64,000 nt of DNA, taken from the NCBI GenBank assembly GCA_977017575.1, contig CDRNVI010000091.1, positions 19,111 to 83,110 of the forward strand, written 5' to 3'. Shown here piece by piece: positions 31,666 to 64,000 of this stretch. The stretch's first letter is position 1; the number at the start of each line of letters is the position of its first letter. The notes below the pieces were generated by a model. That model saw nothing but the letters and a program-made list of their open reading frames with translations. It was not told the DNA's origin and searched no databases. The position numbers and the translations under genes were made by a program. Source of the stretch: Paramoeba atlantica. Its lineage: Eukaryota; Protista; Discosea.

Positions 31666-32128
31666 TTTTTTAGGCTCTTCGTTAAACGCGGTGGTTGTTT
31701 TCAACTTAGAAGTCACTCATGCTATGCGCTTCACGTTGAAAACTACCACCGCGTTTAACGAAGAGCCTAAAAAAGAAAAATATCCAAAAGATCATGAATA
31801 ATCTACTTTTTTGGAGGTAAAAGCTCGATTTTTCGGCAAAGATTGCGAAAATTTACACCGAATTTGGGCTATTTTGGATGCCTTCCCAGTAGGGGCAGGA
31901 GTCGAATCTGTCGATAAAAACGTCGTAGAATGGTAGCTGAGGTCCCAAACTCTTAAAATACGATTTAGGAGTCGATTTGGGAAAAATAATATTTTTACTT
32001 TTTTTGGGTCAAAAAATCTTTTGGGTCAAAAATCTTTTTTGGTCACCCTAAAAATTTCGGAATTTTTGACCTTTTCGGACCCCTCCTGCGCGTACCAGGC
32101 GGGGGGGGTACCCCCAGGGGGTATGGAA
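31666..32128 (-). repeat. Divergent-subfamily copy of the hairpin-ended element (reverse orientation)
   Basis: 121-bp-type hairpin at 31666-31780, then a diverged core that is the reverse-complement homologue of 44588-44825. GC block 32066-32128 is paralogous to the main unit. Confidence 0.8.
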
Positions 32129-33037
32129 AATTGCGGTGGTTGTAAAACTACCGCTCTACACTCGATTATTGAAAAAAAAGTGAACAAAAACAGTGAAAAT
32201 ATAAAGAGGAACACAGTAATATAATAGAAGAAAAAAATATAAAAGGGGGCTCCGGTGGTCCAAAACTGAAAAAAAAATTTGAAAAAAATGGGGGGTCCAG
32301 GGGGGGGGTCCAGGGGGGGGGTCCAGGGGGGGGGGGGCATGGTCGAGCAAATTTTTTCGAAAAAATTAGTTTTCGAAAAAAAACCGCAGAAAGGGTAGCC
32401 GGGGTCTTGGCGCGCATTTTCCACCCCCCTACCCGGGGGTGACCCCCCCGCGTATCCGCAGGACGGGTCCGCCAAGTTCGGATTTTTTCGGAAAAAATTT
32501 TTTGAAAAAAATTTCAACTTGGCGAAAAAAATGACAAAAAAAATATTTTTCCAAAATCGTTTCCCCTATTGTATTTTGATAGTTTGGGACCTACACTAGC
32601 TTTCTACGCAGTTGTTTTCGCAAGGTATCACTTCTTCGAACTGTGGTGCGCCCCCCAAAATGACCCATTTTTGACTAAAAAAGGTGAAAAAGTATTTTTC
32701 GGACCTAAAGGGGCATTTTTGTGTCGAAAGAATGGTATGGTTGGAGTCGCATTCTCTACCCAATACGTTCGGTAGGCTTTCATTCATGCCTGCGAGTGAT
32801 TTCCCACGCGCAAATGTCGGATTTAGTGCTCTGAGAGCAAAAATATGCGAAAATGACCCCATTTGTACCCGAAATTCGGCTATTTTTGGCTATAATGTTT
32901 CCGTTTTCCAGGCTAAATTTTCTTTTTTAGGCTCTTCGTTAAACGCGGTGGTGGTTTTCAACTCGGAGAGCGTAGCATGAGTGACTTCTAAGTTGAAAAC
33001 AACCACCGCGTTTAACGAAGAGCCTAAAAAAGAAAAT
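32128..33037 (+). mobile_element. Non-autonomous Helentron-like (HINE/DINE-like) element, complete copy
   Basis: 5' ATTGCGGTGGTTGTAAAACTACCGC stem-loop, (G)nTCCA microsatellite, conserved core, and a 3' 121-bp hairpin (46-bp arms, 29-nt loop) at 32917-33037. Confidence 0.75.
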
Positions 33038-33759
33038 ATTGAAACTTCCATCTTTCGATGTGTCATGTTCGACAATTTCTGTAAAACTAAGCACTCTGTG
33101 CTCTGAATTCAGATCGCCTTTGAAGGTGGTCATTGGCTGCGCGAAGTGCTGGCACAATGTACACAGGTGGACCAATGTCCTTGCTCATGTCGGTGTGCTA
33201 GCTGCTTCGTTAAAAAGCGGGGGTTGTTGTCAAACGGGGCTTCGCAAATTCCTTCCCACTAACGACGCCGGGGCCTTCGCTACTACACATGTATTGCATC
33301 TTACGCAAGCAGTGAGTGTTTCATTTTATGGAACGGTGATGTATCCCCATTTAGTGTCTTGTGTCGGGCCCTGGTTATTGCGCAGAAGCACAATCAGAGA
33401 CCGTTCATCAAACACTGGCCAAATGGTATCATTTTTAATCGGCCGTGTTGGAGGCTTGAGCCGGATCTGGCTCTTCTTGAGCTAGTTCAGCTCTTTACTT
33501 CTTTACGCTGACAATTCCTGCATAGGAGAAGAACTGCACAATCATTTTCGGTGATCATTAGATGGGCCTCTACGATACCGTTGTCGAACTCTATATCAGA
33601 GTCTTGAGATGTTTGCCAGGAACTTCATTACACCGTTCATATTGATCCATGTGAAGCTATGGCTCATGTACTCGGAGGGTTGGCCGAGACAAAAGGCAGT
33701 TGCCATTTCGATTGAAATTTCCATCTTTCGATGTGTCATGTTCGACAATTTCTGTAAAA

Positions 33760-35268
33760 CTATTCGGTAAGAAGAGTACGGATTTGCCGTTTGAAAATTC
33801 TAGTGGATCTGACAGGATACCATGGCACAAGCTCAGACCGCTTGAGAAGGTTGGCCCGCATTTCCTGCATTTTCTCGCTCTCATCATTCGTAAAGATTCT
33901 TAAATCTAGAACGTTATCGTTCATGTTTGGACTCACTGTGATCCAGTAAGTTGGCAGTCCGCATCGCCTGTATAAGTCGTAGATCTGACTTTGTGATGCC
34001 TTTCGCTTTGCTGGCGAAAAGGGTATCGTTTTTGCGCATACTTGCACAAATGGCAGAAACTTTGTTTCCAGAAGTTTCGCCTCGGAACTGTTTGGGTTCC
34101 TTATAGCCTGTTGTACAATGTGATGGAAAGCATCAGCCTTGCAAAAATTCATGAGGCTTCTGTGCGTATCTTTGTTATACTTCAGATTTTGCACTACTGC
34201 TGATGAGACTGCACGGCGCCGAAGCACATCGTAGCAGTAAAATATGAATCCAGCATTCTTTGCAAATCGGGAATCCGATTGCTCTAGAATTTCCTTGATT
34301 TCATATAGTTCAAACGTTGAACCCTTAAAAGGGTACTTTTGCATCAGCGTCGGAAATGCTCCGAGCAAGATGTTTTCCATGTCGGTATACTCATTGAGTA
34401 AACCTTCTTTTTGTTTCAGTTGCATCGCCACGGCATGCGTAATTTGCGCACCCGCCGGCGCATTGCTTACAGGGCTGTGATCAGTTACAAAAGATCGTGT
34501 GATCTCACCGCGAGGATCGCGATGTAACGTATCGGAAGCCACTGCTTGGGTGACCATACTGTTGATGGCGTTTTCACCCTCTTGGGAAACAGATCTATCC
34601 CAAAGATGTGAGACAACGTCTCTACAATGTTGCTCGGTAACAACGTTGATCTTTCCTTCCTCTTTCAGTTGAGCATACACGTGGTTATGCTCACAGAGGA
34701 AGTGTACCCAGGTGTTCGGAGTCTCTGATTTCACCCCGAATATGCCACTCAGCTGTGCAGAACATAGTCTTTGACTACGTTTCGTTCTCCGTTCGTTGGC
34801 TATCCAAACAATTTGGATGTTCTTAATCGCGCCCTCGAGATCAGGAACTCTTTCGAGTTGCAAGAGCTCAAGGGTTTCGCGTGCTGTAGCCGTCACGTGT
34901 CCAGTGAATTTCGTGTCTGGCCTTAAGGATGCGGCATATGCGCCACCTTTCCTATATACACTGATGATTGTGCAGTGTAAAAACACCTTTTGAAGAAGGA
35001 TCTCTTCTACCAGCGTGGGTATTGGAAGGTGATTTGTAGAAGGTTGTTCTACTGGACCGCGGGGAATTCTCCCTTTTTTGTCCATTATTCTTTGATCCCT
35101 TGCACAAAGTTGCGCTTCGGGATTCGGAATGTCACTTTCGAGAAGAATAACTTTACAAGAATCACAACTTGTATCACAACTTGCGATACGTTGATCGTCG
35201 TTCATTCTCTTTTTGTACCTTTTCATGCACTCTTCTTGAGCTTCCGTACTGACTGAAAAATCTTCCAA
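33760..35268 (-). pseudogene. Helitron Rep N-terminal fragment (DUF6570 plus Helitron_like_N)
   Basis: LPIPTLVEEILL, KFTGHV, WVHFLCEHNHVY, LLGAFPTL, FIFYCYDVLRRR and GLPTYWITVSPN motifs. Truncated before the HUH motif. Confidence 0.85.
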
Positions 35269-35651
35269 AGGAAGACGATCAATGTAGGAAGTCTCATAGA
35301 AGTATTTGAGTGCGTCTTTTGGATTGCGCTCAATGTCAAAACGTGTTCGACGTGAGCCATCTCCATTGACTTCGTATGTGTCAAAATTGACAATACGTTT
35401 CGCGATGCAACATCGTTCAAGCCAGCACCGAAGTTCATTGGCTGAAGATTCTTTTCATATTTCGTTTGTGTGAAAGATGGTATTTTCACACATCTAGCAT
35501 ATGCTGCACTGTCAATAGTGCTAGCATTCGTCACATTCGTGACAGTTGCAGGAGAAAAAAACGCACCTTTAGGACCACTCGAGCGCCCCCTCTTTTTTTT
35601 GCAAAGCGATTTGCAAACCCCAATTTTCCAGAGGGAACATGTTTTGACTAT

Positions 35652-35840
35652 GTAACCCAGGTCGAAGGGGACGAGGGCGATACCAATAGTGTAGGTGCGA
35701 CAGTTTCCCACAGGAAATACGGTATCTCCCTTATGGCATGAAGGCAAGGCTCCGAAAAAGGTGGAGATGCCGTTTTTCCCGAGGGAAACTGCCGCACTTG
35801 CACTATTGGTATCTCCCTCGTCCCCTTCAACCTGGGTCAC
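35652..35840. mobile_element. Small inverted-repeat insertion (MITE-like) interrupting the Helitron relic
   Basis: GTAACCCAGGTCGAAGGGGACGAGGGCGATACCAATAGTG... (35652-35712) is an imperfect inverted copy of 35779-35840. Confidence 0.7.
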
Positions 35841-37936
35841 GTTCTGTCCGTTTCGGCCAATCACGGTCTTGCGTGATAGTGTAGGCTATGGCTCCAAGGG
35901 TGAGCTCAACTTCATCGTTTCCTACTAAAGGAACTGGCGTAGTAGCCATGCTTCCAATATTGTAGACTGTTCGAATTGCCGCTATCTGTGTTTCCATAGA
36001 AGATGTGCAATTGTATGTGAACACTCGTCGTTTAGTCAGACATACCATGGCGAGAGTATCGCCATTGCCTTTGACGTAAACGACGTTATGTCCATCATGA
36101 TATCTCTGAATAGAGCATCTTTTATCTCCATCGTTTTGGAGGATTTCATCACAAACAATGTGTGAATTGATGAGAATATTCTCAATCAGTTGAAAAGATG
36201 TGAGCGTTAGCGTGGAGCATTGCTTCACACGTTCCAGCTCATCATCCTGTGATATTGCATGAACTCTGTTACGCTCAGCTTGTGTGATTCGAAGTCGGAA
36301 AGCCCGAGCTTCAGTATGCCGCGGATGACGGTAAAAATGCTTTTGAAGCCCCTTAAACGTGAACATTTGTTCGGTAGCGCACAAAGTGCACTTGAACTTG
36401 TTCTGTTCGCAGGGGAGGGCAAATTCGATCCAGTCGACTTTTGTTTGAACATAACGTGTATGCTCGCTTGATAACAAATGGTATTCATCTGCTGGGATAA
36501 TACCCGTTGTTCCCCGAATCTGTGCGAAATACGCACATACTTCGCACACAGGAACATTCGTATCAGTCGGGGGCACCTGTGAAGGGTGTCCCATACTGAG
36601 TATGTGTCGCATCATAGATTTGACACTTTGCTTACGTATGGCGTGGGGTGCACATACATACATTCAGCACGATCCAATGGAGAAACTTACGTGAAGCTCC
36701 CGTTTAGGATGCAGATACGCCATTTCCCGATGTTTCAGAGAATTCGCGTGAGTCGTATCCACCATGACTGGCGGAAATTCTTGCAAGATAGCAAAGTAAT
36801 TACAAGGAATGCATAAATGCATTCCTTGGCAATGTTGTGTTACATGCTTGGTCATAGCCTCTTTTTCAAGAGGTGTTTCGGAACACCCAGGCAGTCTTCC
36901 TTCTTCTTCTTTTTCTTCTTCTTCTTCAAAGCTAGACTTTTCCCGGTTCCGGGGCCACCGAGCAGAAACATACATTTCCGCTCGGGGTCTAGTTTTCCGT
37001 TAAATCTTCAATTTGATTTACGCACTGTTTCTGTGCTTGATTCAGTTCAATAGAACTGTTGTCTTCGCGCAATACGTAGCTGCGATCGAACGTAATCTCT
37101 TCGTATTGATTACTGCGAGCCATTGGACGATCCTCATTAAAATGAGCTCTGTCCACCGGTGCACTTGGCTCAGATTGAGCCGAAGTTGCAAGTCGTTCGT
37201 TTTGAATCATTTCAGCATAGCGCTCTCCCGAATTTATGACTGAAATATTGGACCTCGTCCTTGTCATTGCCGATGCAAGATCAACATTTCCTTCAGAGGA
37301 GTTCTCAGTAGAACCTCCTAACGCGGCCGTTAAAGTTCGCATTTGTAGTTCGTAGTGTGCATTCTGCTGAACCAATCGCTCTTCATTGACCACTGCAGTG
37401 TTCTGCTGTGCTTCAAGAGCATCTTGAAGATGGGGTTCAACCCCATCTTCAAGCTCATTCTCGCACTCCAAGCTCATTTTCGTACGCAATGTTGCGTGCT
37501 AATCTTGTTTCTTCCAGAGTGCAAGCACCTTTGCGTCGAAACAAATTTGCCGCGTTCTCTGTATTCTTCGAAGCATTTTCAAACCCTTCTAGGGTCATTT
37601 CATGGCTCGGTGAGCCTTCCTTCCATGGGGAAAGCAATACCACCATGTGTTTCGCTACTCGAAGCTGGCTTCGAGCTCGTGCCCCAGGTTCTTTTGAAGA
37701 ACTCAATATGGGAAAACCTGGTATAGCTGGCGCAGTGTGCAAAGAGCGCAACTGTTGTTCAACAATATCTCCAGGCTCAAATTCCGGGAGGCCTTCAATG
37801 TTCTCAAAGGCGTATCTCCCATTAGCACGACGTCCGCGACGACGTCTTCGATTTGTCCCGCACTCAAAATCTGAATCATGATCCGGCTCTTCTTGAGCTA
37901 GTTCAGCTCTTTACTTATTTACGCTGACAATGCCTG

Positions 37937-38097
37937 GGGTCCAGGTGGGGGGTCCAGTCATGGTCGAGCAAATTTTTTCGAAAAAATTAGTTTTCGAAAA
38001 AAAACCGCAGAAGGGGTAGCCGGGGTCTTGGCGCGCATTTTCCACCCCCCTACCCGGGGGTGACCCCCCCGCGTATCCGCAGGACGGGTCCGCCGTC
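37937..38097 (+). repeat. Partial copy of the hairpin-ended element (G-microsatellite plus GC core)
   Basis: Near-identical to about 32320-32470. Confidence 0.85.
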
Positions 38098-38099
38098 CT

Positions 38100-38665: not shown

Positions 38666-38669
38666 AGTA

Positions 38670-38901
38670 GAAACTAATTTTTTCGAAAAAATTTGCTCGA
38701 CCATGTCCCCCACCCCTGGACCCCCCCCCTGGACCCCCCATTTTTTTCAATTTTTTTTTTCAGTTTTGGAGCACCGGAGCCCCCTTTTATATTTTTTTCT
38801 TCTATTATATTACTGTGTTCCCCTTTATATTTTCACTGTTTTTGTTCACTTTTTTTTCAATAATCGAGTGTAGAGCGGTAGTTTTACAACCACCGCAATT
38901 T
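38670..38901 (-). repeat. 5' half of the hairpin-ended element (reverse orientation)
   Basis: Reverse complement of 32128 to about 32370, including the 5' stem-loop. Confidence 0.85.
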
Positions 38902-39157: not shown

Positions 39158-40168
39158 TATTGCGGTGGTTGTAAAACTACCGCTCTACCCTCGATTATTG
39201 CGGTGGTTGTAAAACTACCGCTTTACCCTCGATTATTGCGATGGTTGTAAAACTACCGCGCTACCCTCGATCATTGAAAAAAAGTGAACAAAAATAGTGA
39301 AACTATAAAGAGGAACACAGTAATATAATAGAAGACAAAAATATAAAAGGGGGCTCCGGTGGTTCGAAACTGAAAAAAAAAATTGAAAAAAATGGGGGGT
39401 CCATGGGGGGGGTCCAGGGGGGGGGTCCAGGGGGGGGTACAGGGGGGGGGGTCCAGGGGGGGGGGGTCCAGGGGGAGGGGTCATGGTCGAGCAAATTTTT
39501 TCGAAAAATTTAGTTTTCGAAAAAAAACCGCAGAAAGGGTAGCCGGGGTCTTGGCGCGCATTTTCCACCCCCCTACCCGGGGGTGACCCCCCCGCGTATC
39601 CGCAGGACGGGTCCGCCAAGTTCGGATTTTTTCGGAAAAAAAAATTTAACTTGGCGAAAAAAATAGCAAAAAAAATGTTTTTCCAAAATCGTTTCCCCTA
39701 TTGTATTTTGATAGTTTGGAACCTACACTAGCTTTCTACGCAGTTGTTTTCGCAAGATATCCCTTCTTCGAGCCGTGGTGCGCCCCTCAAAATGACCCAT
39801 TTTTGACTAAAAAAGGTGAAAAGTATTTTTCAGACCTAAAGGGGCATTTTTGTGTCGAAAGAATGGTATGGTTGGAGTCGCATTCTCTACCCAATACGTT
39901 CGGTAGGCTCCCATTCATGCCTACGAGAGATTTCCCACGCGCAAATGTCGGATTTAGTGCTCTGACAGCAAAAATACCCAAAAATGACCCCATTTTTACC
40001 CGAAATTCCGCTATTTTTGGCTATAATCTTTCCGTTTTCCAGGCTAAATTTTCTTTTTTAGGCTCTTCGTTAAACGCGGCGGTAGTTTTCAACGCGAAGC
40101 GCGCAGCATGAGTGACTTCTCAGTTGAAAACAACCACCGCGTTTAACGAAGAGCCTAAAAAAGAAAAT
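39158..40168 (+). mobile_element. Hairpin-ended element, complete copy with a triplicated 38-bp 5' stem-loop unit
   Basis: Three tandem ATTGCGRTGGTTGTAAAACTACCGC..TACCCTCGAT units, then core and 3' hairpin at 40048-40168. Confidence 0.85.
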
Positions 40169-40264
40169 TGCGGTGGTTGTAAAACTACCGCTCTACCCTC
40201 GATTATTGAAAAAAAAGTGAACAAAAACAGTGAAAATATAGAGAGGAACACAGTAATATAATAG

Positions 40265-43200
40265 ACTCGATCTTTACAAAAAACTCGATCTTTACAAAAA
40301 ACTCGATCTTTACAAAAAACTCGATCTTTACAAGACATTCGATCTTTACAAAACACTCGATCTTTGCTAAAAACTCGATCTTTACAAAAAACTCGATCTT
40401 TACTAAAAATTCGATCTTTACAAAACACTCGATCTTTACAACAAACTCGATCTTTACAAAACACTCGATCTTTACAAAAAGGTCGATCTTTACAAAAAAC
40501 TCGATCTTTACAAAAAACTCGATCTTTACAAAACACTCGATCTTTACAAAAAACTCGATCTTTACAAAAAGGTCGATCTTTACTAAAAACTCGATATTTA
40601 CGAAACACTCGATCTTTACAAAACACTCGATCTTTACAAAAAACTCGATCTTTGCTAAAAACTCGATCTTTACAAAATACTCGATCTTTACAAAAAGGTC
40701 GATCTTTACTAAAAACTCGATATTTACGAAACACTCGATCTTTACAAAACACTCGATCTTTACAAACAACTCGATCTTTACAAAACACTCGATCTTTACA
40801 AAAAACTCGATCTTTACAAAAAACTCGATCTTTACAAAACACTCGATCTTTACAAAAAACTCGATCTTTACAAAAAGGTCGATCTTTACTAAAAACTCGA
40901 TATTTACGAAACACTCGATCTTTACAAAACACTCGATCTTTACAAAAAGGTCGATCTTTACTAAAAACTCGATATTTACGAAACACTCGATCTTTACAAA
41001 ACACTCGATCTTTACAAAATACTCGATCTTTACAAAAAACTCGATCTTTACAAAACACTCGATCTTTACAAAAAACTCGATCTTTACAAAAAGGTCGATC
41101 TTTACTAAAAACTCGATATTTACGAAACACTCGATCTTTACAAAACACTCGATCTTTACAAACAACTCGATCTTTACAAAACACTCGATCTTTACAAAAA
41201 ACTCGATCTTTACAAAAAACTCGATCTTTACAAAACACTCGATCTTTACAAAAAGGTCGATCTTTACTAAAAACTCGATATTTACGAAACACTCGATCTT
41301 TACAAAACACTCGATCTTTACAAAATACTCGATCTTTACAAAAAACTCGATCTTTACAAAACACTCGATCTTTACAAAAAACTCGATCTTTACAAAAAGG
41401 TCGATCTTTACTAAAAACTCGATATTTACGAAACACTCGATCTTTACAAAACACTCGATCTTTACAAACAACTCGATCTTTACAAAACACTCGATCTTTA
41501 CAAAAACCTCGATCTTTACAAAACACTCGATCTTTACAAAAAACTCGATCTTTACAAAAAGGTCGATCTTTACTAAAAACTCGATCTTTACAAAAAGGTC
41601 GATCTTTACTAAAAACTCGATCTTTACAAAAAGGTCGATCTTTACTAAAAACTCGATCTTTACAAAAAATTCGATCTTTACAAAACACTCGATCTTTACA
41701 AAATACTCGATCTTTACAAAAAACTCGATCTTTACAAAACACTCGATCTTTACAAAAAACTCGATCTTTACAAAAAGGTCGATCTTTACTAAAAACTCGA
41801 TATTTACGAAACACTCGATCTTTACAAAACACTCGATCTTTACAAACAACTCGATCTTTACAAAACACTCGATCTTTACAAAAACCTCGATCTTTACAAA
41901 AAACTAGATCTTTACAACAAACTCGATCTTTACAAAAAACTCGATCTTTACAAAAAACTCGATATTTACGAAACACTCGATATTTACAAATGATTCGATC
42001 TTTACAAAAAAACTCGATATTTACGAAACACTCGATATTTACAAAATATTCGATCTTTACAAAAAACTCGATCTTTACAAGACACTCGATCTTTGCTAAA
42101 AACTCGATCTTTACAAAAAACTCGATCTTTACAAAAAACTCGATCTTTGCTAAAAACTCGATCTTTACAAAAAACTCGATCTTTACAAGACACTCGATCT
42201 TTGCTAAAAACTCGATCTTTACAAAAAACTCGATCTTTACAAGACACTCGATCTTTACAAAACACTCGATCTTTGCTAAAAACTCGATCTTTACAAAAAA
42301 CTCGATCTTTACAAAAAACTCGATCTTTACAAAAAACTGGATCTTTACAAAACACTCGATCTTTACTAAAAACTCGATCTTTACAAAAAGGTCGATCTTT
42401 ACTAAAAACTCGATCTTTACAAAAAACTCGATCTTTACAAAACACTCGATCTTTACAAAAACCATGATCTTTACAAAAAATTCGATCTTTACAAAACACT
42501 CGATCTTTACAAAATACTCGATCTTTACAAAAAACTCGATCTTTACAAAACACTCGATCTTTACAAAAAACTCGATCTTTACAAAAAGGTCGATCTTTAC
42601 TAAAAACTCGATATTTACGAAACACTCGATCTTTACAAAACACTCGATCTTTACAAACAACTCGATCTTTACAAAACACTCGATCTTTACAAAAACCTCG
42701 ATCTTTACAAAAAACTAGATCTTTACAACAAACTCGATCTTTACAAAAAACTCGATCTTTACAAAAAACTCGATATTTACGAAACACTCGATATTTACAA
42801 ATGATTCGATCTTTACAAAAAAACTCGATATTTACGAAACACTCGATATTTACAAAATATTCGATCTTTACAAAAAACTCGATCTTTACAAGACACTCGA
42901 TCTTTGCTAAAAACTCGATCTTTACAAAAAACTCGATCTTTACAAAAAACTCGATCTTTGCTAAAAACTCGATCTTTACAAAAAACTCGATCTTTACAAG
43001 ACACTCGATCTTTGCTAAAAACTCGATCTTTACAAAAAACTCGATCTTTACAAGACACTCGATCTTTACAAAACACTCCCTCTTTGCTAAAAACTCGATC
43101 TTTGCTAAAAACTCGATCTTTACAAAAAGGTCGATCTTTACAAAAAACTCGATCTTTACAAAAAACTCGATCTTTACAAAAAACTCGATCTTTACAAAAC

Positions 43201-44588
43201 ACTCGATCTTTACAAAAAACTCGATCTTTACAAAAAGGTCGATCTTTACTAAAAACTCGATATTTACGAAACACTCGATCTTTACAAAACACTCGATCTT
43301 TACAAAAAACTCGATCTTTGCTAAAAACTCGATCTTTACAAAAAATTCGATCTTTACAAAACACTCGATCTTTACAAAATACTCGATCTTTACAAAAAAC
43401 TCGATCTTTACAAACAACTCGATCTTTACAAAAAACTCGATCTTTACAAAAAGGTCGATCTTTACTAAAAACTCGATATTTACGAAACACTCGATCTTTA
43501 CAAAACACTCGATCTTTACAAACAACTCGATCTTTACAAAACACTCGATCTTTACAAAAAACTCGATCTTTACAAAAAACTCGATCTTTACAAAACACTC
43601 GATCTTTACAAAAAACTCGATCTTTACAAAAAGGTCGATCTTTACTAAAAACTCGATATTTACGAAACACTCGATCTTTACAAAACACTCGATCTTTACA
43701 AAATACTCGATCTTTACAAAAAACTCGATCTTTACAAAACACTCGATCTTTACAAAAAACTCGATCTTTACAAAAAGGTCGATCTTTACTAAAAACTCGA
43801 TATTTACGAAACACTCGATCTTTACAAAACACTCGATCTTTACAAACAACTCGATCTTTACAAAACACTCGATCTTTACAAAAACCTCGATCTTTACAAA
43901 ACACTCGATCTTTACAAAAAACTCGATCTTTACAAAAAGGTCGATCTTTACTAAAAACTCGATCTTTACAAAAAGGTCGATCTTTACTAAAAACTCGATA
44001 TTTACGAAACACTCGATCTTTACAAAACACTCGATCTTTACAAACAACTCGATCTTTACAAAACACTCGATCTTTACAAAAACCTCGATCTTTACAAAAA
44101 ACTCGATATTTACAAGAGATTCGAGCTTTACAAAAAACTAGATCTTTACAACAAACTCGATCTTTACAAAAAACTCGATCTTTACAAAAAACTCGATATT
44201 TACGAAACACTCGATATTTACAAATGATTCGATCTTTACAAAAAAACTCGATATTTACGAAACACTCGATATTTACAAAATATTCGATCTTTACAAAAAA
44301 CTCGATCTTTACAAGACACTCGATCTTTGCTAAAAACTCGATCTTTACAAAAAACTCGATCTTTACAAGACACTCGATCTTTGCTAAAAACTCGATCTTT
44401 ACAAAAAACTCGATCTTTACAAGACACTCGATCTTTGCTAAAAACTCGATCTTTACAAAAAACTCGATCTTTACAAGACACTCGATCTTTGCTAAAAACT
44501 CGATCTTTACAAAAAACTCGATCTTTACAAGACACTCGATCTTTGCTAAAAACTCGATCTTTACAAAAAACTCGATCTTTACAAAAAA
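40265..44588 (+). repeat. 18-bp satellite array, about 240 monomers (consensus ACTCGATCTTTACAAAAA)
   Basis: Read directly. Variant monomers (GGTCGA, TATTTACG, CTTTGCT, TGATTCGA) recur in higher-order blocks. Confidence 0.98.
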
Positions 44589-44890
44589 GTTTGCGCCAAA
44601 AAAAGTAAAAATATTATTTTTTCAAAATCGACTCCTAAAATGTATTTCGAGAGTTTGGGACCTCAGCTACCATTCTACGACGTTTTTTACGAAAGATTGG
44701 CTTCCTACCACTAGTGGTAAGGCATCAAAAACGGCCCAAATTCGGTTAAAAGTTCGCAATTTGTGCCGAAAAATCGCGCTTTGTCACCCAAAAGAATAAA
44801 TTTAGAATATTTATGATCTTTTGGCGAAGTCATTCATGCTGCGCGCTTCGCGTTGAAAACTACGACCGTGTTTAACGAAGAGCCTAAAAT
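44588..44890 (+). repeat. 3' part of the divergent hairpin-ended element closing the satellite
   Basis: Homologous to the reverse complement of 31785-32010. Ends in a half hairpin ...GTTTAACGAAGAGCCTAAAA. Confidence 0.8.
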
Positions 44891-49207: not shown

Positions 49208-49441
49208 TTTGGATACGTTTGAAGTTTACGCGGTTCGTTCTGGAATTATGAAAAGAAAGTGATGTTGAATTGGGCAGAAAAAATGATAAGCAAATATGGA
49301 GAATAAGGCATTCAAATCGCCTGATTGTGGACCTCAAGCCAGACGGCTTGTCGAATGTTTCTACGCATGACAGATAAATTCACCAAATGACTTTGGTGGA
49401 AAGCTCCAACGGAAGTATTTTCACAAGAAATGGCGGCAAGT

Positions 49442-52243
49442 TTATAAATAATTCCTTTCCCCGACCAAATAATACACGTCCGAATATCCAGGCCAACTTG
49501 GGAAAGCTGTGATAATCTCCAAACTCTGGCTTGAGAGATCAACACCTGTGATGTATCCATACCCCAACACTCGGGAATTTCGCAGGCGTTGAGAAAAACC
49601 TTCGAGAGAGACCATTTTGTCTTCTCTGTCTTCACGTAAGGTGAGGTCTGTGTCAGTTCGAATCTCTGATTTCGTGGCTGAACTTTGTAACTCAGAAGAT
49701 GATGGTTTATCCATATTTTCACGTTTCTTTCGCTTGGAAGATCCTTCCTCCCGTTTTACCTGCACAAACGAGAGAATTCGTCCCATTAGATTTAAACTAA
49801 ACGCCGAGATCTCTTCTACTCCAATCGCCTCGAGCAAGGAGGTCTCACCAAGAGGAAGAATCCCCTCAATTGAATCTAACCGATGAGACGCTCCAACTCG
49901 AACCAATCGATGAGAAAAACTCGAAAGGGTACGGAGATGAGAGTGAGCACAAAATATACACGACAGAAGGCGATCAGAATCCAGATGAGACTTTTCTGTC
50001 CTAGATAACGCATGCTTTCCCTGAGAAATAAACTGTGGTTGTGATTGTTCTATTTTTGAGTCCTTTTCCACTTTGATTGTATCCTTTGCTATTTTTTTCT
50101 CTTTGCTCCATCGTAAGGTGCCGTAAAAATATTTACGAAGAAACGAGATGATGGAACTGGGATAGTAAAGTGTTCCATTCACTGTCGGGACAGTGACGAG
50201 TCCCATCGTGTCATAAATGCGAGAGAGATGAGGTTTAAGAATAGAAAGCGGAAGGACTTGTGATGGTTTCCCCGAGGGTTGAAGAGGAAGACTGGGGGGA
50301 GTAGAGGAAGCTGTCCTTCCCTCTTCCAACACAAAGGGTGAAAAAAGAGATGTGTTTTGATCCGATTCTTGCGGATACGCTCCCTCCGATGTTTTTTCAC
50401 GAACGTCACAAGGAACATGACGTCCACGAAGAGGCTCGACGGCATAAAGCGAAATATCAGTCATCCCGTTGGGATTTACGCAGTGGTCCTGATAGAGCAT
50501 ATTCTGGAGAGAAAAGTCCTCTTCCGTTTCAGGTAAAGACACGGAGGCATTGGATGCGTTTGCCGAGTCCAGAACGTTACGTACGGGTTTAGGTGAGCAT
50601 CGCTTTACCTCATGTATCAGTTGTTCATTGCCCACACAAAAAACCGTGTCAATATCAAAACTGTGAAGGACTAACGAGAGAAATGACCGCACCGTGAGGG
50701 GGGCAGAAAAGTCAATTGCTGGAGGAGACTCTTCTGTTTCGGAAATTGCCGATCTCAATCCAGAAATAGAGGAATGCTTTTCCTCATCCTCTAACGGAGT
50801 GGAAAGATCCAATGACGGAATGCGCACCACAAGACCTCCCCATCTCTCCTTTTCTTTTGCATGTTTTACAAAATATTGCCGCGTAACGGATGCCAGTCGA
50901 CGAACACACTGCACATAAAACGACCAATTTCCCTGTGGATGTGCAAATCCATAGAAAACAGAAAATGCAGGAGAATGCGTAAAAATACGACTGGGGTGAA
51001 GTGTCGCGTTAAGATGACTTACGCTCATGCTTTCGGGCAATCCTAAAAGCGGGTGGGAGGGGTCAAGGTCGACATAGGTCAAAGGATATCCCGCGCGAAC
51101 ACCGTAGTTGAGTAAAGCTTGTGAGAGGGTTCGTTTCCCGCTGCATGGACTTCCACAAATCATCACGCGTGGACCACAGAATGGAGCAGAGGATGAAGAT
51201 GCTAGATTTGTAGAAATAGAAGAAACATTCGCATTCGAGGAGATCGATCCAAAACTTGATGAAACCGTTTGCGTTACCCTTTTTCGTGTAGTTTCTTCAT
51301 TTCCTTCATCCTCCTGGTTCATCCTTTCCCTCCTGAGCACCCTTTCCTTTTGTTTTTCCCTTTCCTTTCCCACCACCGCAAATGAGGCCAGCGAAGCCAG
51401 CCCTTTTGCTTTTTCCTCCCCCTGCTGGGCGCGTCTCCGGGCACTGTGCAACACACTGTGGAGATCCACAAACACAGGCGTGTCGGAATGCGGGAGGACG
51501 GCACAAAAATTTCGTGGATCTAAGGGGTGGGTCTCTCGTTGTTGTTTTTCCCCAAAGACGGAGCGCGGGGTGGGGTAGGGGGTCGTGAGCCCTACACGCG
51601 CCACACACCCTGTCGGGGAATACACCCCAAGGTGGGAACACTCACAGGAGAAAAGATAGCGGTGTTGGAGAAACAGCTCGGCACCGAAAATTTCGGCCGT
51701 GGAGAATAAAGAAGAGCTGGGAGAGGCTGGAGAAGAAGAAACAGAAGAAGAAACCGAAGTCTTGGGGAGAGAAGAAACAGAGGCTGATCTTTCTTTTTCA
51801 TGGGGTCGTTTTTTTAATCCAGCAGCTTTGGTTTGTTGTTGGGTTGCGCAGCGTGGAGAAGAGACAGTGTCTTCGTTTTCCGCCCAGGAGGAGTAGTCAT
51901 CATCTTCTGTCGTTTTTTGGGGGTTTCCGATAGAGGATGAATGCGCACTGCGTCGTGGTTTTAGAATGGTCAGATGTAAGGCAGGGGCAATGTAATCAGC
52001 TGCATACTCTCGTAGCTCCGTGCTTCCGGAGGCAGGCGTGTTCTTTTGGAGATGTGATAAAGTTTTAACACTTTCATTTGCGGGACGATCGATTGATTTA
52101 GAGGAATTATGGCTTTGATGTGTCTCGCTTTTGTGGAATGAGAAACAGTGGGGTCCTAATGGGAGAGTATTGATGCCGCAGTGCACACGCAACTCATGGC
52201 GTGGGGGAATCAGAAAGTCAACTGTAGGTCCCGAGTGAGACAT
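49442..52243 (-). CDS. CLP1: Polyribonucleotide 5'-hydroxyl kinase Clp1
   Basis: IPPRHELRV N-terminus, PRVMICGSPCSGKRTL P-loop, TYVDLDP Walker B, C-terminal VLGYGYITGVD. Confidence 0.85.
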   Translation of the reverse strand: MSHSGPTVDFLIPPRHELRVHCGINTLPLGPHCFSFHKSETHQSHNSSKSIDRPANESVKTLSHLQKNTPASGSTELREYAADYIAPALHLTILKPRRSAHSSSIGNPQKTTEDDDYSSWAENEDTVSSPRCATQQQTKAAGLKKRPHEKERSASVSSLPKTSVSSSVSSSPASPSSSLFSTAEIFGAELFLQHRYLFSCECSHLGVYSPTGCVARVGLTTPYPTPRSVFGEKQQRETHPLDPRNFCAVLPHSDTPVFVDLHSVLHSARRRAQQGEEKAKGLASLASFAVVGKEREKQKERVLRRERMNQEDEGNEETTRKRVTQTVSSSFGSISSNANVSSISTNLASSSSAPFCGPRVMICGSPCSGKRTLSQALLNYGVRAGYPLTYVDLDPSHPLLGLPESMSVSHLNATLHPSRIFTHSPAFSVFYGFAHPQGNWSFYVQCVRRLASVTRQYFVKHAKEKERWGGLVVRIPSLDLSTPLEDEEKHSSISGLRSAISETEESPPAIDFSAPLTVRSFLSLVLHSFDIDTVFCVGNEQLIHEVKRCSPKPVRNVLDSANASNASVSLPETEEDFSLQNMLYQDHCVNPNGMTDISLYAVEPLRGRHVPCDVREKTSEGAYPQESDQNTSLFSPFVLEEGRTASSTPPSLPLQPSGKPSQVLPLSILKPHLSRIYDTMGLVTVPTVNGTLYYPSSIISFLRKYFYGTLRWSKEKKIAKDTIKVEKDSKIEQSQPQFISQGKHALSRTEKSHLDSDRLLSCIFCAHSHLRTLSSFSHRLVRVGASHRLDSIEGILPLGETSLLEAIGVEEISAFSLNLMGRILSFVQVKREEGSSKRKKRENMDKPSSSELQSSATKSEIRTDTDLTLREDREDKMVSLEGFSQRLRNSRVLGYGYITGVDLSSQSLEIITAFPSWPGYSDVYYLVGERNYL

Positions 52244-52643
52244 AATGTACGAATAAATAATCTGAAGAACAAGCCCACAAATCCCGTTACATTCGGAAGC
52301 AATATTAAAAATATTGAGAGATAGCAGGTTAAAGAGTCACAGATTAGAGTTGCATGTATTAAAATCAAAAACTCCCCTGACGGTTAGCTTTCACAAAGAC
52401 ACTTTCGTTTTTCATTGTTCACACTATTATCACCGTCTTGATCTGCGAAATCATTTCGACCCTCTTCGCCCCCTACTTAAGAGTCCTATTTACTTATGGG
52501 TTCGGTTTTGTAGATCAAAGATATTTTTTTCTTAGCTCGACCCCTCCACCCTATTTAAGAATCCAAGCGTCCATAGTCGGCGCACTCCTAAGTAGCGGAG
52601 AAGTAATTAGATAACATATCAAAAAACAAAAATGGATGTGGTG

Positions 52644-53312
52644 TTATAAACGTAATAGCGTAGTGACTCCAGCAAGTGCACCCATTGCACAGGCAAAAGT
52701 TAAACATTGCTCAGATGAAGGCTTCTTAAAAATATATGTGCCATCTAACAAAAAGACATTGAGATCCTCGGGTAACATTTTTGAATCATACAATCCGTAA
52801 AGACCTGAATTCCCTGAGAGGTTGATGCGACATAAGTGCTCGGATAGGTCATGGATATATACAATACCTTGAAACTTGTTCCCGTCTAAATACAGCGATC
52901 TTAACATTGAAGGGCACTGGGAAAACTTTAAGTTCCCTGTAAATTTATTGTTGGATAAAGTTATCGCCCGCATGTCCCGTGGGAATTCATCGAGTGATAC
53001 AGGACCGCTTAGTTTGTTAGACGACAAGTCTAGATATGCCAATTGTTGAGGAAGGTGCCTCCAAGTCAAATTGCATCCTCGTAAATTGTGGTTATTCCAA
53101 TATATGGAGCGCACATTCCCTTCGGGATTACAGACAACCCCACTCCATTTACACGGTGGACAGGAAGAGCTCCAACTGTGATGGTAGGTTCGTATTTTTT
53201 GTATGAACATCGATAGTATAATTTCGTCAGGTTGAGAATTTAGACCGACTCTTCCTAAGCGAGATTTACGAATCAGTGGGGATTCTCTGGTTAAAACGTT
53301 AAACCTCAACAT
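52644..53312 (-). CDS. Leucine-rich repeat protein with hydrophobic C-terminus (copy 1)
   Basis: PCKWSGVVCN cap, LRRs, tail CLTFACAMGALAGVTTLLRL. Confidence 0.9.
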   Translation of the reverse strand: MLRFNVLTRESPLIRKSRLGRVGLNSQPDEIILSMFIQKIRTYHHSWSSSCPPCKWSGVVCNPEGNVRSIYWNNHNLRGCNLTWRHLPQQLAYLDLSSNKLSGPVSLDEFPRDMRAITLSNNKFTGNLKFSQCPSMLRSLYLDGNKFQGIVYIHDLSEHLCRINLSGNSGLYGLYDSKMLPEDLNVFLLDGTYIFKKPSSEQCLTFACAMGALAGVTTLLRL

Positions 53313-53455
53313 AAAGGAATATAATTTGAAACTGAAAAAAATGTTACTTGCAATTTGTTGCCTTGTGTATAGGTAGTTTCAAGACCTTTGGCCATGAAAT
53401 ACTCGTAGTCCCCCACGGTAAGGGAATCGGTTTTGGGCGAAAAAGGCCAAATATA

Positions 53456-53789
53456 CAGTGCGGGATTTTGTTACGGGACACGTTAATTACGGGACAACTC
53501 AATTACGGAACACTTGGGTCTTGGAGTGAGTTTCGCTCCCACTTCCTGGAACGAAGTGTGTAGGATCGGGCTAGGCCGGCGTATTCTCCGCAAAACAGTT
53601 TTACACGCCCAAATAAGCAGTGTATAAAAATAACAAAAAATATAGCAACAGAACCTTTAGTACAATCACTCACTACATTTCACAGATCATTTCACAGGTC
53701 AAAGCTAAGGGACACTTAATTACTGGACACTTTTGACCAGAAAGGGGGTGTCCCTTAATTAAGGTGTCCCGTAATAATGTTCCGCACTG
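53456..53789. mobile_element. Tc1/mariner-type MITE (334 bp)
   Basis: TA|CAGTGCGGGATTTTGTTACGGGACAC ... GTGTCCCGTAATAATGTTCCGCACTG|TA. 26-bp TIRs, 22/26 matching. Confidence 0.85.
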
Positions 53790-53882
53790 TAAACCATGTT
53801 CCAGGATACCTACTAGGTATACCTAGTATACCTAGTAGGTATACTAAGTGGGCATGGGTATACTGTCCTGGAACATGGTTTA
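53790..53882. repeat. 93-bp palindromic element
   Basis: 17-bp inverted ends TAAACCATGTTCCAGGA / TCCTGGAACATGGTTTA around an internal TACCTACTAGGTA...TACCTAGTAGGTA palindrome. Confidence 0.8.
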
Positions 53883-53900
53883 GTTTTCTTCTATTAACTA

Positions 53901-54774
53901 CAGGGGGGAAATTAAGTTATGTCAACAAAAGTCATGTTAATTAACACGACTTATGTTGACACAACTTATGTTGCCACAACATATGTTCACTTTTTTACAA
54001 AACTTTGCCAATTCTTACTGTTTGCTAAAAAAACACGCCCATTGAAGAAAAGTTTCATTTAGTCACTCATTTCACAAAGAAAATTGCAAACTTCAAACGC
54101 AGTAAAATATTTATTAGAGCACGGGCCCATTTACAGAAGATTCCAAAAAATATATTATAATTTACAAAAGACAATTACCAATCAATCGAGTGACATTTTG
54201 TAGCGGAACTCGCGCTCTTTAGCCGCTCGGACTATCAAAGGTGACCGTTTTAAGAGTGTTGCACTTCTAGAAATTTTCTTCAGTTTTTCAATTTCTGGGT
54301 GAGATACTTTCTTACTTTTTTTCTTCGCTTTCTTACGAGCTTCTACTCAAGGTCAGTGAGTATTGTGGACCTTCCCATAGATTTTGATTTAAAGTAGCGC
54401 TCGTTTTCGGGTAGACCTTTACGTTTACTTTCGTTGTAGTGAGATAAGTATTTTGAAAAAAGGGAAACTGAATGAAACGTACCATGAACTCTTTCCGATT
54501 CGCGAGAAGCTTTGCTCGGACCCAAGCTTTTCGCCATTTGTGCCACCATGACCTTTTCCTCTAGGGAAGAAGGGTACTGCTTTGGGGTCTCTATGGAATT
54601 TAGGTCGCCCAAGACCTTTGCTTCAAGGGGGGTGAGCAAATATGCATCTATTTTATAAATAAAGAAAACAAAATCTATTTTTTAACATACTTTTGTTCCT
54701 CACCACCTTTTTCGCATTAACACGACTTTTGTTGACACAACTTTTGTTGCCACGACTTTTGTTACGATAACTTG
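53901..54774 (-). mobile_element. Decayed pogo/Tigger-like element
   Basis: TA-flanked ends with 15-bp subterminal repeats (ACAAAAGTCGTG..). The - strand encodes SLEEKVMVAQMAKSLGPSKASR...GRSTILTDLE*...FRYKMSLD*L, resembling pogo Brinker-type plus Tc5 HTH domains. Confidence 0.65.
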
Positions 54775-54816
54775 TATCTCTTACTGGGAGGGCACAGTAG
54801 CCGATTACGAATGGAG

Positions 54817-55485
54817 TCATAAACGTAATAGTGTAGTGACTCCAGCAAGTGCACCCATTGCACAGACTAAAGTTAAACATTGCCAAGATGAAGGCTTCTT
54901 AAAAATATATGTGCCATCTAACAAAAAGACATTGAGATCCTCGGGTAACCTTTTTGAATCATACCATCCGTAAAGACCTGAATTCCCTGAGAGGTTGATG
55001 CGACATAAGTGCTCGGATAGGTCATGAATATATACAATACCTTGAAACTTGTTCCCGTCTAAATACAGCGATCTTAACATTGGAGGGCACTCAGAAAACT
55101 TTAAGTTCCCTGTAAATTTATTGTTGGATAAAGTTATCGCCCGCATGTCCCGTGGGAATTCATCGAGTGATACAGGACCGCTTAGTTTGTTAGACGACAA
55201 GTCTAGATATGCCAATTGTTGAGGAAGGTGCCTCCAAGTCAAATTGCATCCTCGTAAATTGTGGTCATTCCAAAACATAGAGCGCACTTGCCCTTCGGGA
55301 TTACAGACAACCCCACTCCATTTACATGGTGAACAGGAAGATTTCCAACTGCGATGATGAGTTTCAATTTCTTGTATGAACATCGATAGCATAATTTCGT
55401 CAGGTTGAGAATTTAGACCGATTCTTCCTAAGCGAGATTTACGAATCGACAGGGATTCGCTGGTTAGAACGTTTAACCTCAACAT
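54817..55485 (-). CDS. Leucine-rich repeat protein (copy 2, close paralogue of 52644-53312)
   Basis: Same 222-aa length from ATG 55485. Only scattered substitutions. Confidence 0.9.
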   Translation of the reverse strand: MLRLNVLTSESLSIRKSRLGRIGLNSQPDEIMLSMFIQEIETHHRSWKSSCSPCKWSGVVCNPEGQVRSMFWNDHNLRGCNLTWRHLPQQLAYLDLSSNKLSGPVSLDEFPRDMRAITLSNNKFTGNLKFSECPPMLRSLYLDGNKFQGIVYIHDLSEHLCRINLSGNSGLYGWYDSKRLPEDLNVFLLDGTYIFKKPSSWQCLTLVCAMGALAGVTTLLRL

Positions 55486-55785
55486 AAAGGAATAGAGTTT
55501 GAAACTGAAAAAAAATGTTACTTGTAATTTGTTGCTTTGGGTGGTTTCAAGACCTTTGGCAATGAAATACCATAGTCCCCCATCACAAGGGAATCGTTTT
55601 TTAGCGAAAAAGGCCAAATATCGGCTATGTCTCTACTTCGTTGAACGATTCAACGAACGGGTTTTGATTTTTTTTCACCGAAATTTTCTAGGATTCTGCC
55701 AGCGAAGCCCACTTCTGGAGGCAAAAGCCCCCGTCTGAGAGCAAGGCCCAACTGTGAGCGAAGCTCACTTCTGGAGAAAGAATTC

Positions 55786-59340: not shown

Positions 59341-59359
59341 GAGCCTAAAAAATCAAATG

Positions 59360-60866: not shown

Positions 60867-62746
60867 TTGCGGTGGTTGTAAAACTACCGCTCTACACTCG
60901 ATTATTGAAAAAAAAGTGAACAAAAACAGTGAAAATATAAAGAGGAACACAGTAATATAATAGAAGAAAAAAATATTGCGGTGGTTGTAAAACTACCGCT
61001 CTACACTCGATTATTGAAAAAAAAGTGAACAAAAACAGTGAAAATATAAAGGGGAACACAGTAATATAATAGAAGAAAAAAATATAAAAGGGGGCTCCGG
61101 TGGTCCAAAACTGAAAAAAAATTTTGAAAAAAATGGGGGGTCCATGGGGGGGGTCCAGGGGGGGGGTCCAGGGGGGGGGGGGTCCAGGGGGGGGGGTCCA
61201 GGGGGGGGGGGCATGGTCGATCAAATTTTTTCGAAAAAATTAGTTTTCGAAAAAAAACCGCAGAAAGGGTAGCCGGGGTCTTGGCGCGTATTTTCCACCC
61301 CCCTACCCGGGGGTGACCCCCCCGCGTATCCGCAGGACGGGTCCGCCAAGTTCGGATTTTTTCGGAAAAAAGTTTTTGAAAAAAATTTCAACTTGGCGAA
61401 AAAAATGACAAAAAAAATAATTTTCCAAAATCGTTTCCCCTATTGTATTTTGATAGTTTGGGACCTACACTAGCTTTCTACGCAGTTGTTTTCGCAAGGT
61501 ATCACTTCTTCGAACTGTGGTGCGCCCCCCAAAATGACCCATTTTTGACTAAAAAAGGTGAAAAAGTATTTTTCGGACCTAAAGGGGCATTTTTGTGTCG
61601 AAAAAATGGTATGGTTGGAGTCGCATTCTCTACCCAATACGTTCGGTAGGCTTTCATTCATGCCTGCGAGTGATTTCCCACGCGCAAATGTCGGATTTAG
61701 TGCTCTGAGAGCAAAAATATGCGAAAATGACCCCATTTGTACCCGAAATTTGGCTATTTTTGGCTATAATCTTTCCGTTTTCCAGGCTAAATTTTCTTTT
61801 TTAGGCTCTTCGTTAAACGCGGCGGTAGTTTTCAACGCGAAGCGCGCAGCATGAGTGACTTCTAAGTTGAAAGCAACCACCGCGTTTAACGAAGAGCCTA
61901 AAAAAGAAAATAAAAGGGGGCTCCGGTGGTCCAAAACTGAAAAAAAAATTTGAAAAAAATGGGGGGTCCATGGGGGGGGTCCAGGGGGGGGGGTCCAGGG
62001 GGGGGGTCCAGGGGGGGGGTCCAGGGGGGGGGTCCAGGGGGGGGGGCATGGTCGATCAAATTTTTTCGAAAAAATTAGTTTTCGAAAAAAAACTGCAGAA
62101 AGGGTAGCCGGGGTCTTGGCGCGCATTTTCCACCCCCCTACCCGGGGGTGACCCCCCCGCGTATCCGCAGGACGGGTCCGCCAAGTTCGGATTTTTTCGG
62201 AAAAATTTTTTTGAAAAAAAATTCAACTTGGCGAAAAAAATGACAAAAAAAATATTTTTCCAAAATCGTTTCCCCTATTGTATTTTGATAGTTTGGGACC
62301 TACACTAGCTTTCTACGCAGTTGTTTTCGCAAGGTATCACTTCTTCGAACTGTGGTGCGCCCCTCAAAATGACCCACTTTTGACTAAAAAAGGTGAAAAA
62401 GTATTTTTCGGACCTAAAGGGGCATTTTTGTGTCGAAAGAATGGTATGGTTGGAGTCGTATTCTCTACCCAATACGTTCGGTAGGCTTTCATTCATGCCT
62501 GCGAGTGATTTCCCACGCGCAAATGTCGGATTTAGTGCTCTGAGAGCAAAAATATGCGAAAATGACCCCATTTGTACCCGAAATTCGGCTATTTTTGGCT
62601 ATAATCTTTCCGTTTTCCAGGCTAAATTTTCTTTTTTAGGCTCTTCGTTAAACGCGGCGGTAGTTTTCAACGCGAAGCGCGCAGCATGAGTGACTTCTAA
62701 GTTGAAAGCAACCACCGCGTTTAACGAAGAGCCTAAAAAAGAAAAT
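60866..62746 (+). repeat. Two tandem copies of the hairpin-ended element
   Basis: Duplicated 5' module at 60866-60975. 3' hairpins at 61791-61911 and 62626-62746. Confidence 0.9.
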
Positions 62747-62839
62747 AATATTTATAAACCCCTATTATAATATATATTTAATATAAACCACCGTCCGGGT
62801 TATTATACCTAGGAGGTATAATAAGTGTCCCTAGGTATA

Positions 62840-64000
62840 ATTTTCTTTTTTAGGCTCTTCGTTAAACGCGGTGGTTGCTTTCAACTTAGAAGTCACTCAT
62901 GCTGCGCGCTTCGCGTTGAAAACTACCGCCGCGTTTAACGAAGAGCCTAAAAAAGAAAATTTAGCCTGGAAAACGGAAAGATTATAGCCAAAAATAGCCA
63001 AATTTCGGGTACAAATGGGGTCATTTTCGCATATTTTTGCTCTCAGAGCACTAAATCCGACATTTGCGCGTGGGAAATCACTCGCAGGCATGAATGAAAG
63101 CCTACCGAACGTATTGGGTAGAGAATGCGACTCCAACCATACCATTTTTTCGACACAAAAATGCCCCTTTAGGTCCGAAAAATACTTTTTCACCTTTTTT
63201 AGTCAAAAATGGGTCATTTTGGGGGGCGCACCACAGTTCGAAGAAGTGATACCTTGCGAAAACAACTGCGTAGAAAGCTAGTGTAGGTCCCAAACTATCA
63301 AAATACAATAGGGGAAACGATTTTGGAAAATTATTTTTTTTGTCATTTTTTTCGCCAAGTTGAAATTTTTTTCAAAAACTTTTTTCCGAAAAAATCCGAA
63401 CTTGGCGGACCCGTCCTGCGGATACGCGGGGGGGTCACCCCCGGGTAGGGGGGTGGAAAATACGCGCCAAGACCCCGGCTACCCTTTCTGCGGTTTTTTT
63501 TCGAAAACTAATTTTTTCGAAAAAATTTGATCGACCATGCCCCCCCCCCCCCTGGACCCCCCCCCTGGACCCCCCCCCTGGACCCCCCATTTTTTTCAAA
63601 ATTTTTTTTCAGTTTTGGACCACCGGAGCCCCCTTTTATATTTTTTTCTTCTATTATATTACTGTGTTCCCCTTTATATTTTCACTGTTTTTGTTCACTT
63701 TTTTTTCAATAATCGAGTGTAGAGCGGTAGTTTTACAACCACCGCAATTTTCTTTTTTAGGCTCTTCGTTAAACGCGGTGGTTGCTTTCAACTTAGAAGT
63801 CACTCATGCTGCGCGCTTCGCGTTGAAAACTACCGCCGCGTTTAACGAAGAGCCTAAAAAAGAAAATTTAGCCTGGAAAACGGAAAGATTATAGCCAAAA
63901 ATAGCCGAATTTCGGGTACAAATGGGGTCATTTTTGCATATTTTTGCTCTCAGAGCACTAAATCCGACATTTGCGCGTGGGAAATCACTCGCAGGCATGA
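62840..64000 (-). repeat. Tandem copies of the hairpin-ended element in inverted orientation, running off the window
   Basis: Hairpins at 62840-62960 and 63747-63867. Core is the reverse complement of 60976-61790. Confidence 0.9.

Follow-up and report, generated by a model that had tools for sequence, protein, structure and literature searches.

The window analysed here is a stretch of 64,000 nucleotides (contig CDRNVI010000091.1, positions 19,111 to 83,110 of the forward strand, Paramoeba atlantica assembly GCA_977017575.1). It contains many copies of an element of about 905 bp, together with the remains of a gene for a Helitron-type protein in which a replication initiator and a helicase are fused (RepHel). 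When one copy (window 62840-63750) was used as BLAST query against the full 64-kb window, it recovered several fragments besides six copies that are whole or nearly so, and all ten places at which a preliminary description of this DNA had listed the element were matched. The copies of the element and the pieces of the gene are listed below, where C-numbers such as C43 denote contigs of the genome (45.7 Mb in 248 contigs).

30171-30296, minus strand: internal fragment of the element, 89% identity
30594-31611, plus strand: fragment of the autonomous gene (N-terminal zinc-finger-like repeat region), 84-88% to C43:153023-154848
31665-31779, minus strand: terminal hairpin alone (-48.9 kcal/mol, z -14.5), nearest to the 3' hairpin of the autonomous element (94%)
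32131-33036, plus strand: whole, very probably non-autonomous element of 906 bp, 98% to the reference copy, with A and T at its flanks
33091-37936, minus strand: scrambled, very probably dead relic of the autonomous gene, 91-97% to C43:155005-160556
37936-38094, plus strand: internal fragment of the element, 94-95%
38671-38901, minus strand: 5' part of the element, 97-98%
39160-39235, plus strand: two tandem 38-bp stubs of the 5' end, preceding the next whole copy
39236-40167, plus strand: older whole copy with 5 microsatellite units, 90%
60867-60975, plus strand: 5' part of an outer copy (element positions 1-109), interrupted at A|T by an inner copy
60976-61910, plus strand: inner whole copy, 97%, inserted into the outer copy at A|T with no target-site duplication
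61911-62745, plus strand: remainder of the outer copy, 6 microsatellite units
62841-63747, minus strand: whole copy of 907 bp, the reference
63748-64000, minus strand: 3' part (253 nt) of another copy, abutting the previous one head-to-tail without spacer and truncated by the end of the window

The element starts with TTGCGG and ends in ...CCTAAAAAAGAAAA. Its 24-nt 5' motif, which is found eight times in the window, forms a small hairpin of 9 bp around a 4-nt loop (z -5.0), and its 3' end is a hairpin of about 121-123 nt (-50.1 kcal/mol, z -11.2) that none of 200 shuffled sequences equalled. Between the two lies a (G)nTCCA run, with 2-4 units in most of the 35 copies that were compared genome-wide (see below) and 3-6 in the copies of the window. 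Element positions 3-12 read GCGGTGGTTG, and the inverse copy of this motif, CAACCACCGC, sits in the right arm of the 3' hairpin, 27 nt from the full-length end, and this position within the hairpin departs from the common HLE2 design. The inverted repeat is therefore asymmetric, being terminal at the 5' end and 27 nt internal at the 3' end, and when the end sequences were examined no true terminal inverted repeats were seen. In all of this the preliminary description, which had the inverse motif about 30 bp from the end and expected terminal inverted repeats to be missing, proved accurate. Also absent from the element's termini are the ends of canonical Helitrons (HLE1), namely 5'-TC, 3'-CTRR and a short hairpin 10-12 nt from the end. 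The hairpin of canonical HLE1 elements is short, about 16-20 nt, in contrast to the roughly 121 nt observed here.

Genome-wide, no fewer than 45 full copies (96-98% identity) and at least 1616 candidate places were counted, both figures being lower bounds. For closer comparison 33 genomic copies were cut out with their flanks and combined with two copies of the window. The members of this 35-copy set are 891-918 bp long, show 0.7-2.2% divergence (mean 1.5%) from their majority sequence and differ pairwise by 2.5%. The family is thus young, in agreement with the recent activity that had been proposed for it, with the proviso that the set holds the best-scoring copies and its age figures leave older ones out. 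Since the sampling was of this kind, older copies certainly exist, such as the one at 39236, which is only 90% identical.

The flanks of these copies define the insertion site. The base preceding TTGCGG is A in 35 of 35 copies and the base following the A-rich tail is T in 34 of 35; counting independent sites, A stands at -1 in 31 of 31 and T at +1 in 30 of 31, and positions -3, -2, +2, +3 and +4 are A or T in 84-94% of the 31 sites (the window as a whole contains 27% A and 27% T). The insertion point falls precisely between A and T within about 8 bp of AT-rich sequence, and no target duplication accompanies it. The TT target assumed in the preliminary description has to be given up accordingly. 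As the element begins with T and ends with A, its boundaries could be shifted by one base either way; nevertheless, A|T alone is invariant, and the alternative T|T reading would hold for 19 of the 31 sites.

The absence of a duplication, which had been expected, could be tested directly by joining both flanks of each copy and matching the joined sequence to all fetched sequence. This gave three clean empty sites, one of which lies in the window:

29729-29821, plus strand: empty site, 97% paralogue of the flanks of the filled copy C37:300300-301199, with the insertion point at A29774|T29775

The second (L019:8917-9016) matches the flanks of the C19 copy in 100 of 100 bases, and the third, in L047, is an inverted duplicate of the flanks of the C69 copy, about 1 kb from that copy and likewise identical in 100 of 100 bases. 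The nested pair of the window, with junctions at 60975|60976 and 61910|61911, provides a fourth filled/empty case: in the outer copy, the sequence ...AAATA TAAAAGG... of an intact element is parted after AAATA by the inner copy, which runs from TTGCGG to GAAAA, and resumes with TAAAAGG.... In none of these four comparisons was there a target-site duplication. A further candidate (L054 against L013) was discarded because of a 3-nt difference at the junction.

A long element with the same ends was found on contig C43 (151111-163956; 12.85 kb, ending near 163956). Over 206 nt its 5' end is 98% identical to that of the short element, and in the 3' hairpin the two differ in the loop only. Unit-like sequence also makes up the last 0.65 kb of the long element and its first 1.7 kb, the latter as two copies with 96% and 84% identity. 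The enzyme gene that it carries (152882-161806) stays open for 2975 codons and appears to be intact. Pfam places DUF6570 at amino acids 1360-1485 of the protein (45 bits), Helitron_like_N at 1611-1831 (77 bits) and PIF1 from 2520 onwards (90 bits), with the HFH motif at 1826, YLIKY at 2041 and a Walker A motif at 2549. In a PDB search the helicase matched Pif1 structures and Helraiser (7lcc, E 9e-8). No Exo_endo_phos match, indicative of an endonuclease domain, was obtained with Pfam in all 2975 amino acids. The family had been predicted to have both autonomous and non-autonomous members, and this is borne out: long and short elements share both ends, and an open DUF6570-Rep(HUH/Y2)-PIF1 frame with these very termini exists on C43.

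Further long elements on C52, C41 and C38 have the same 5' end and inner layout as that on C43, lie in different flanks and are preceded by A before TTGCGG, and on C43, C52 and C41, three of the four, the same 3' end is found, with its tail followed by T. The genes of the C52, C41 and C38 elements are broken once or more. Searching the genome with the Helitron_like_N profile gave 29 matches, several of them within long open frames. Among these we noticed at least two further gene groups, exemplified by the 2130-codon open frame C99:13191-19580, whose match to the Pfam profile is of a different kind although unit copies lie close to it. As a separate observation, the first ~900 amino acids of the C43 protein (C43:152882-155600; L011:4883-7600) consist of tandem Cys/His-rich, zinc-finger-like modules of about 100 amino acids each; four of these are nearly identical, and Pfam gives a weak hint alone (Zn_ribbon_TiaS).

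Measured against this protein, the relic in the window is composed of pieces covering amino acids 708-1058, 1193-1788 and parts of 1966-2559, in scrambled order. It retains DUF6570 and part of Rep, and Pfam detects both DUF6570 and Helitron_like_N in it, while HFH, YLIKY and the helicase past Walker A are missing. The preliminary description saw it as directly bounded on both ends by copies of the short element. However, the relic begins 54 bp past the whole copy that ends at 33036 and is in the opposite orientation to it, and on its other side it adjoins merely a 159-bp internal fragment (37936-38094). Because of this gap and inversion on one side and the internal fragment on the other, the neighbouring copies cannot be regarded as the relic's own termini.

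Taken together, these observations make it very probable that the ~905-bp repeat is a non-autonomous element of Helitron2 type (HLE2), moved in trans by the RepHel protein of the 12.85-kb element, and that the relic is a dead, rearranged copy of the latter. Of the earlier designation "Helitron2/Helentron-like", the first half stands, given DUF6570 and the design of the ends, and the second does not: as there is no endonuclease domain, the family is Helitron2-like and not a Helentron. Several points weigh against this interpretation. The family is assigned to HLE2 by its DUF6570 marker and the structure of its ends rather than by a tree; in inserting at A|T it behaves like canonical Helitrons and not like HLE2; and the boundaries of the element can slide by one base, owing to the T at its start and the A at its end. 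In addition, the Rep part of the C43 protein had no match in PDB and none to Helraiser by sequence (phmmer), word-based protein searches with the DUF6570-Rep part found no relatives (a weak test, in view of length limits and a 5-residue word filter), and a search for empty sites found none for any 12.85-kb element.

Alternative explanations must also be considered, the first of which concerns the arrays at 60.8-64 kb rather than the family as such. That copies occur head-to-tail as well as inverted, as had been noted earlier, is clear from the spacer-free head-to-tail joins at 40167/40168 and 63747/63748 and from the copies ending at 62745 (plus) and occupying 62841-63747 (minus), which lie tail-to-tail around a 95-bp spacer (62746-62840). 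Such arrangements could be assembly artefacts, i.e. collapsed or mis-joined repeats: arrays also stand at the contig starts of C69 and C81, and the inverted pair has inverted flanks too. Nevertheless, adjacent copies differ by 1-3% and in microsatellite length and hence do not represent the same sequence placed twice; the A|T junctions of the nested pair are clean; and comparable arrays occur on other contigs, where the head-to-tail joins carry a TTA or TATTA spacer, giving spacers of 0, 3 and 5 nt in all. We therefore consider an artefact unlikely.

If the arrays are genuine, they can have come about either by repeated insertion or by rolling-circle read-through. Since the tail A followed by TTGCGG is itself an A|T site, arrays can arise by repeated insertion beside an existing 5' end. 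The spacer-free joins are compatible with a single-stranded or circular intermediate, without being proof of one. As for the inverted pair, the outer 23 nt on either side of its 95-bp spacer are inverted copies of each other, and the pair consequently looks less like two insertions than like a single one that was duplicated, flank included, in inverted orientation. We also observed that stubs of the element's first 38-42 nt precede whole copies at three places (window 39160-39235, C34:19699-19740 and C82:41306-41347), each stub terminating at ...GATTA before the next TTGCGG, that is, at an A|T within the element's own 5' region.

One may also consider that the 0.9-kb unit is an independent repeat, either a satellite or some other transposon, that piles up near Helitron genes, in which case the ends of the long element would be nested or adjacent insertions. 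Units do nest within each other, on C41 the unit arrays continue directly into the long element, and the unit-like make-up of the first 1.7 kb (two copies) and last 0.65 kb of the long element could be read in this way. However, the unit-like layout recurs in four long elements at the 5' end (C43, C52, C41 and C38) and in three at the 3' end (C43, C52 and C41), and these elements have differing outer flanks with the same A|T junctions. Furthermore, the inner unit-like copy has diverged to 84% identity, as expected of an old part of the element rather than of a fresh insertion, these ends are common to no other transposase, and insertion at A|T without a duplication is what an HUH enzyme produces. 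An independent repeat thus appears highly improbable. A cut-and-paste foldback element of the miniature inverted-repeat (MITE) type or a poly(A)-tailed retroposon (SINE), which the long terminal palindrome and the A-rich 3' tail of varying length might bring to mind, can be practically dismissed, given four empty-site comparisons without a duplication, the lack of terminal inverted repeats, and a tail that is always complementary to the element's own upstream sequence, whether shortened (16 of 35 copies) or extended (one).

The Helitron2-type reading leaves one feature that deserves separate discussion, the ragged 3' tail. The right arm of the hairpin ends in ...GAAAA in 19 copies, GAAA in eight, GAA in one, GA in one, A6 in four, A5 in one, TAAA in one and TAA in two; the tail is shortened in 16 of the 35, and in the L059 copy it is longer by 23 nt, which are complementary to the sequence upstream of that copy's own left arm. 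The T-runs of the left arm, on the other hand, are identical in all 35 copies. When tail classes were placed on a maximum-likelihood tree of the element bodies, 16 changes were required, as against 15.1 after shuffling, and well-supported sister pairs (L037/L044 and L043/L053) have differing tails. Slippage after insertion was considered as the cause and ruled out, since the left-arm T-runs are invariant and tail length does not follow the tree. For the same two reasons it appears that the tail is determined anew during or close to each transposition event rather than being passed on.

How the element moves can be outlined from the known chemistry of HUH/Y2 enzymes and from the Helraiser model. 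One tyrosine would nick the top strand at flank-A|TTGCGG and stay attached to the 5' end, after which the PIF1 helicase would peel the strand off in the 5' to 3' direction. Landmarks for the protein may be provided by the mini-hairpin at the 5' end and by its mirror image within the big 3' hairpin, which itself would act as a stop signal, and the freed strand would then be joined into a cleaved A|T target. The tail past the GC-rich stem would most likely be reset at each jump, the free 3'-OH of the hairpin being trimmed, and occasionally extended on the left arm, before joining. A stronger proposal, which we offer only tentatively and with more doubt than confidence, is that the right end is not fixed by a sequence-specific cut at all, but is whatever remains once the free 3'-OH has been nibbled back, or extended on the left arm, and joined to the T of the target. 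If this were true, ragged, self-complementary and non-inherited tails would be a natural footprint of a rolling-circle step that is otherwise seen only in vitro. In any case, hundreds of fresh insertions constitute a natural series in which the formation of Helitron 3' ends can be studied.

HLE1 elements begin with TC, terminate in CTRR and have A|T as their target; in HLE2 elements the target is T|T, the inverted repeats are short and asymmetric, the 3' end bears a stem-loop and DUF6570 serves as the marker; and Helentrons have an additional endonuclease (PMC11417382). The present family matches HLE2/Helitron2 in its protein marker and in the design of its ends, which it unites with the A|T target of canonical Helitrons, and it is closest to FoHeli1 and FoHeli2 of Fusarium oxysporum. 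These have hairpins at both ends, a TNAT|T target and an inverted repeat that is part of the hairpin, 38-51 nt from the 3' end (PMC5148889). Shared with them are a RepHel without endonuclease, hairpins at both ends, an asymmetric inverted repeat of ~10-12 nt within the hairpin (38-51 nt inside there, 27 nt here), an AT-rich target, non-autonomous partners with the same ends, and recent activity. In contrast to them, the present family has a ragged 3' end and an invariant A|T target, its 3' hairpin of ~121 nt extends right up to the terminus, its gene has about double the length and includes ~900 amino acids of zinc-finger-like repeats, and its host is of kinetoplastid type.

With Helraiser (HLE1, PDB 7lcc) the family has in common the fusion of an HUH/Y2 Rep to PIF1, insertion at A|T without a duplication and a 3' hairpin as stop signal, whereas it has neither 5'-TC nor 3'-CTRR, does have DUF6570, and encodes a Rep that is not detectably similar by phmmer. 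The short elements resemble DINE-1/HINE elements, which are non-autonomous Helentrons of insects and other animals with endonuclease-bearing partners and a TT target (PMC4067079), in being short, non-coding, high-copy passengers with a subterminal inverted repeat, a 3' stem-loop and an expandable central microsatellite or tandem core, here (G)nTCCA and once a 4.3-kb array of an 18-bp satellite. They differ in that the partner has no endonuclease and the target is A|T. Finally, the Phytophthora proto-Helentron, as described in PMC11417382, likewise joins an HLE2-type protein to features otherwise typical of HLE1; unlike there, the large hairpin is here at the 3' end.

The genome in which this family resides had been described as kinetoplastid-type, and two markers, present on contigs with the element as well, uphold that description. 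KMP-11 (Pfam PF03037) gave two full-length matches (150-151 bits) and none in 14 control genomes; one of the two is on contig C12, where the element and a Helitron gene are found as well. Ten dispersed sites carry the spliced-leader core CAGTTTCTGTACT..., compared with none for the control, and at the three sites inspected (L061-L063: C3:645510, C10:202834 and C14:91762) it is joined to three different downstream sequences. As judged by these markers the genome is kinetoplastid-type, an assignment that stops at that level and does not extend to membership in the trypanosomatids. The dispersed leader copies look like retro-copied RNAs that carried the leader. In two of the three inspected cases, the tail of the leader copy (...GATACAGTTTCTGTACTTTGTTG) is preceded by an A-rich run.

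Published surveys credit trypanosome-related protists with no elements of the present type. In 57 trypanosomatid genomes no DNA transposons were found, with Merlin alone reported, in Bodo and Perkinsela (PMC12278014), and Helitron-like open reading frames of Diplonema are mentioned in passing only (PMC10161547). A young and abundant Helitron2-type family in a genome with kinetoplastid markers thus widens the host range of rolling-circle transposons to a group from which such a family is unreported. The finding is relevant, too, when "host" PIF1 paralogues are counted in the kinetoplastid-type group, as some PIF1 genes could be Helitron-derived.

Within the window, a nest of this element family occupies the interval 29-45 kb and is situated between open reading frames on the plus strand (1.8-28.9 kb) and others on the minus strand (45.2-55.6 kb). 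The long open reading frames at 1832-28858 are all on the plus strand, and those at 45158-55617 all on the minus strand. Since the strands are plus on the left and minus on the right, the nest appears to fill a convergent strand-switch region such as is known from kinetoplastid gene clusters. No tRNA genes were found in the window.

The nest also contains a variant of the element and a piece of a second family:

40168-44889, plus strand: variant element following the previous copy without spacer, composed of the first 99 nt, a satellite and ~300 nt of a second family, with a half-hairpin end
31849-32013, minus strand: fragment of the second family, 85% to the reverse complement of 44590-44754

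The 18-bp satellite of the variant (consensus ACTCGATCTTTACAAAAA, 88% matches) takes up the usual position of the microsatellite and runs to 240 units over 4.3 kb (40265-44588). A 97% twin of the variant exists at C37:360184-366000; it was rejected as proof that the satellite copy has transposed, for the two have 300 bp of flank in common and are therefore segmental duplicates. The second family is non-coding, has a related 3' hairpin and is present at no fewer than 1118 candidate places genome-wide; most of its genomic members have both arms of the hairpin, whereas the copy in the window (44589-44889) has one.

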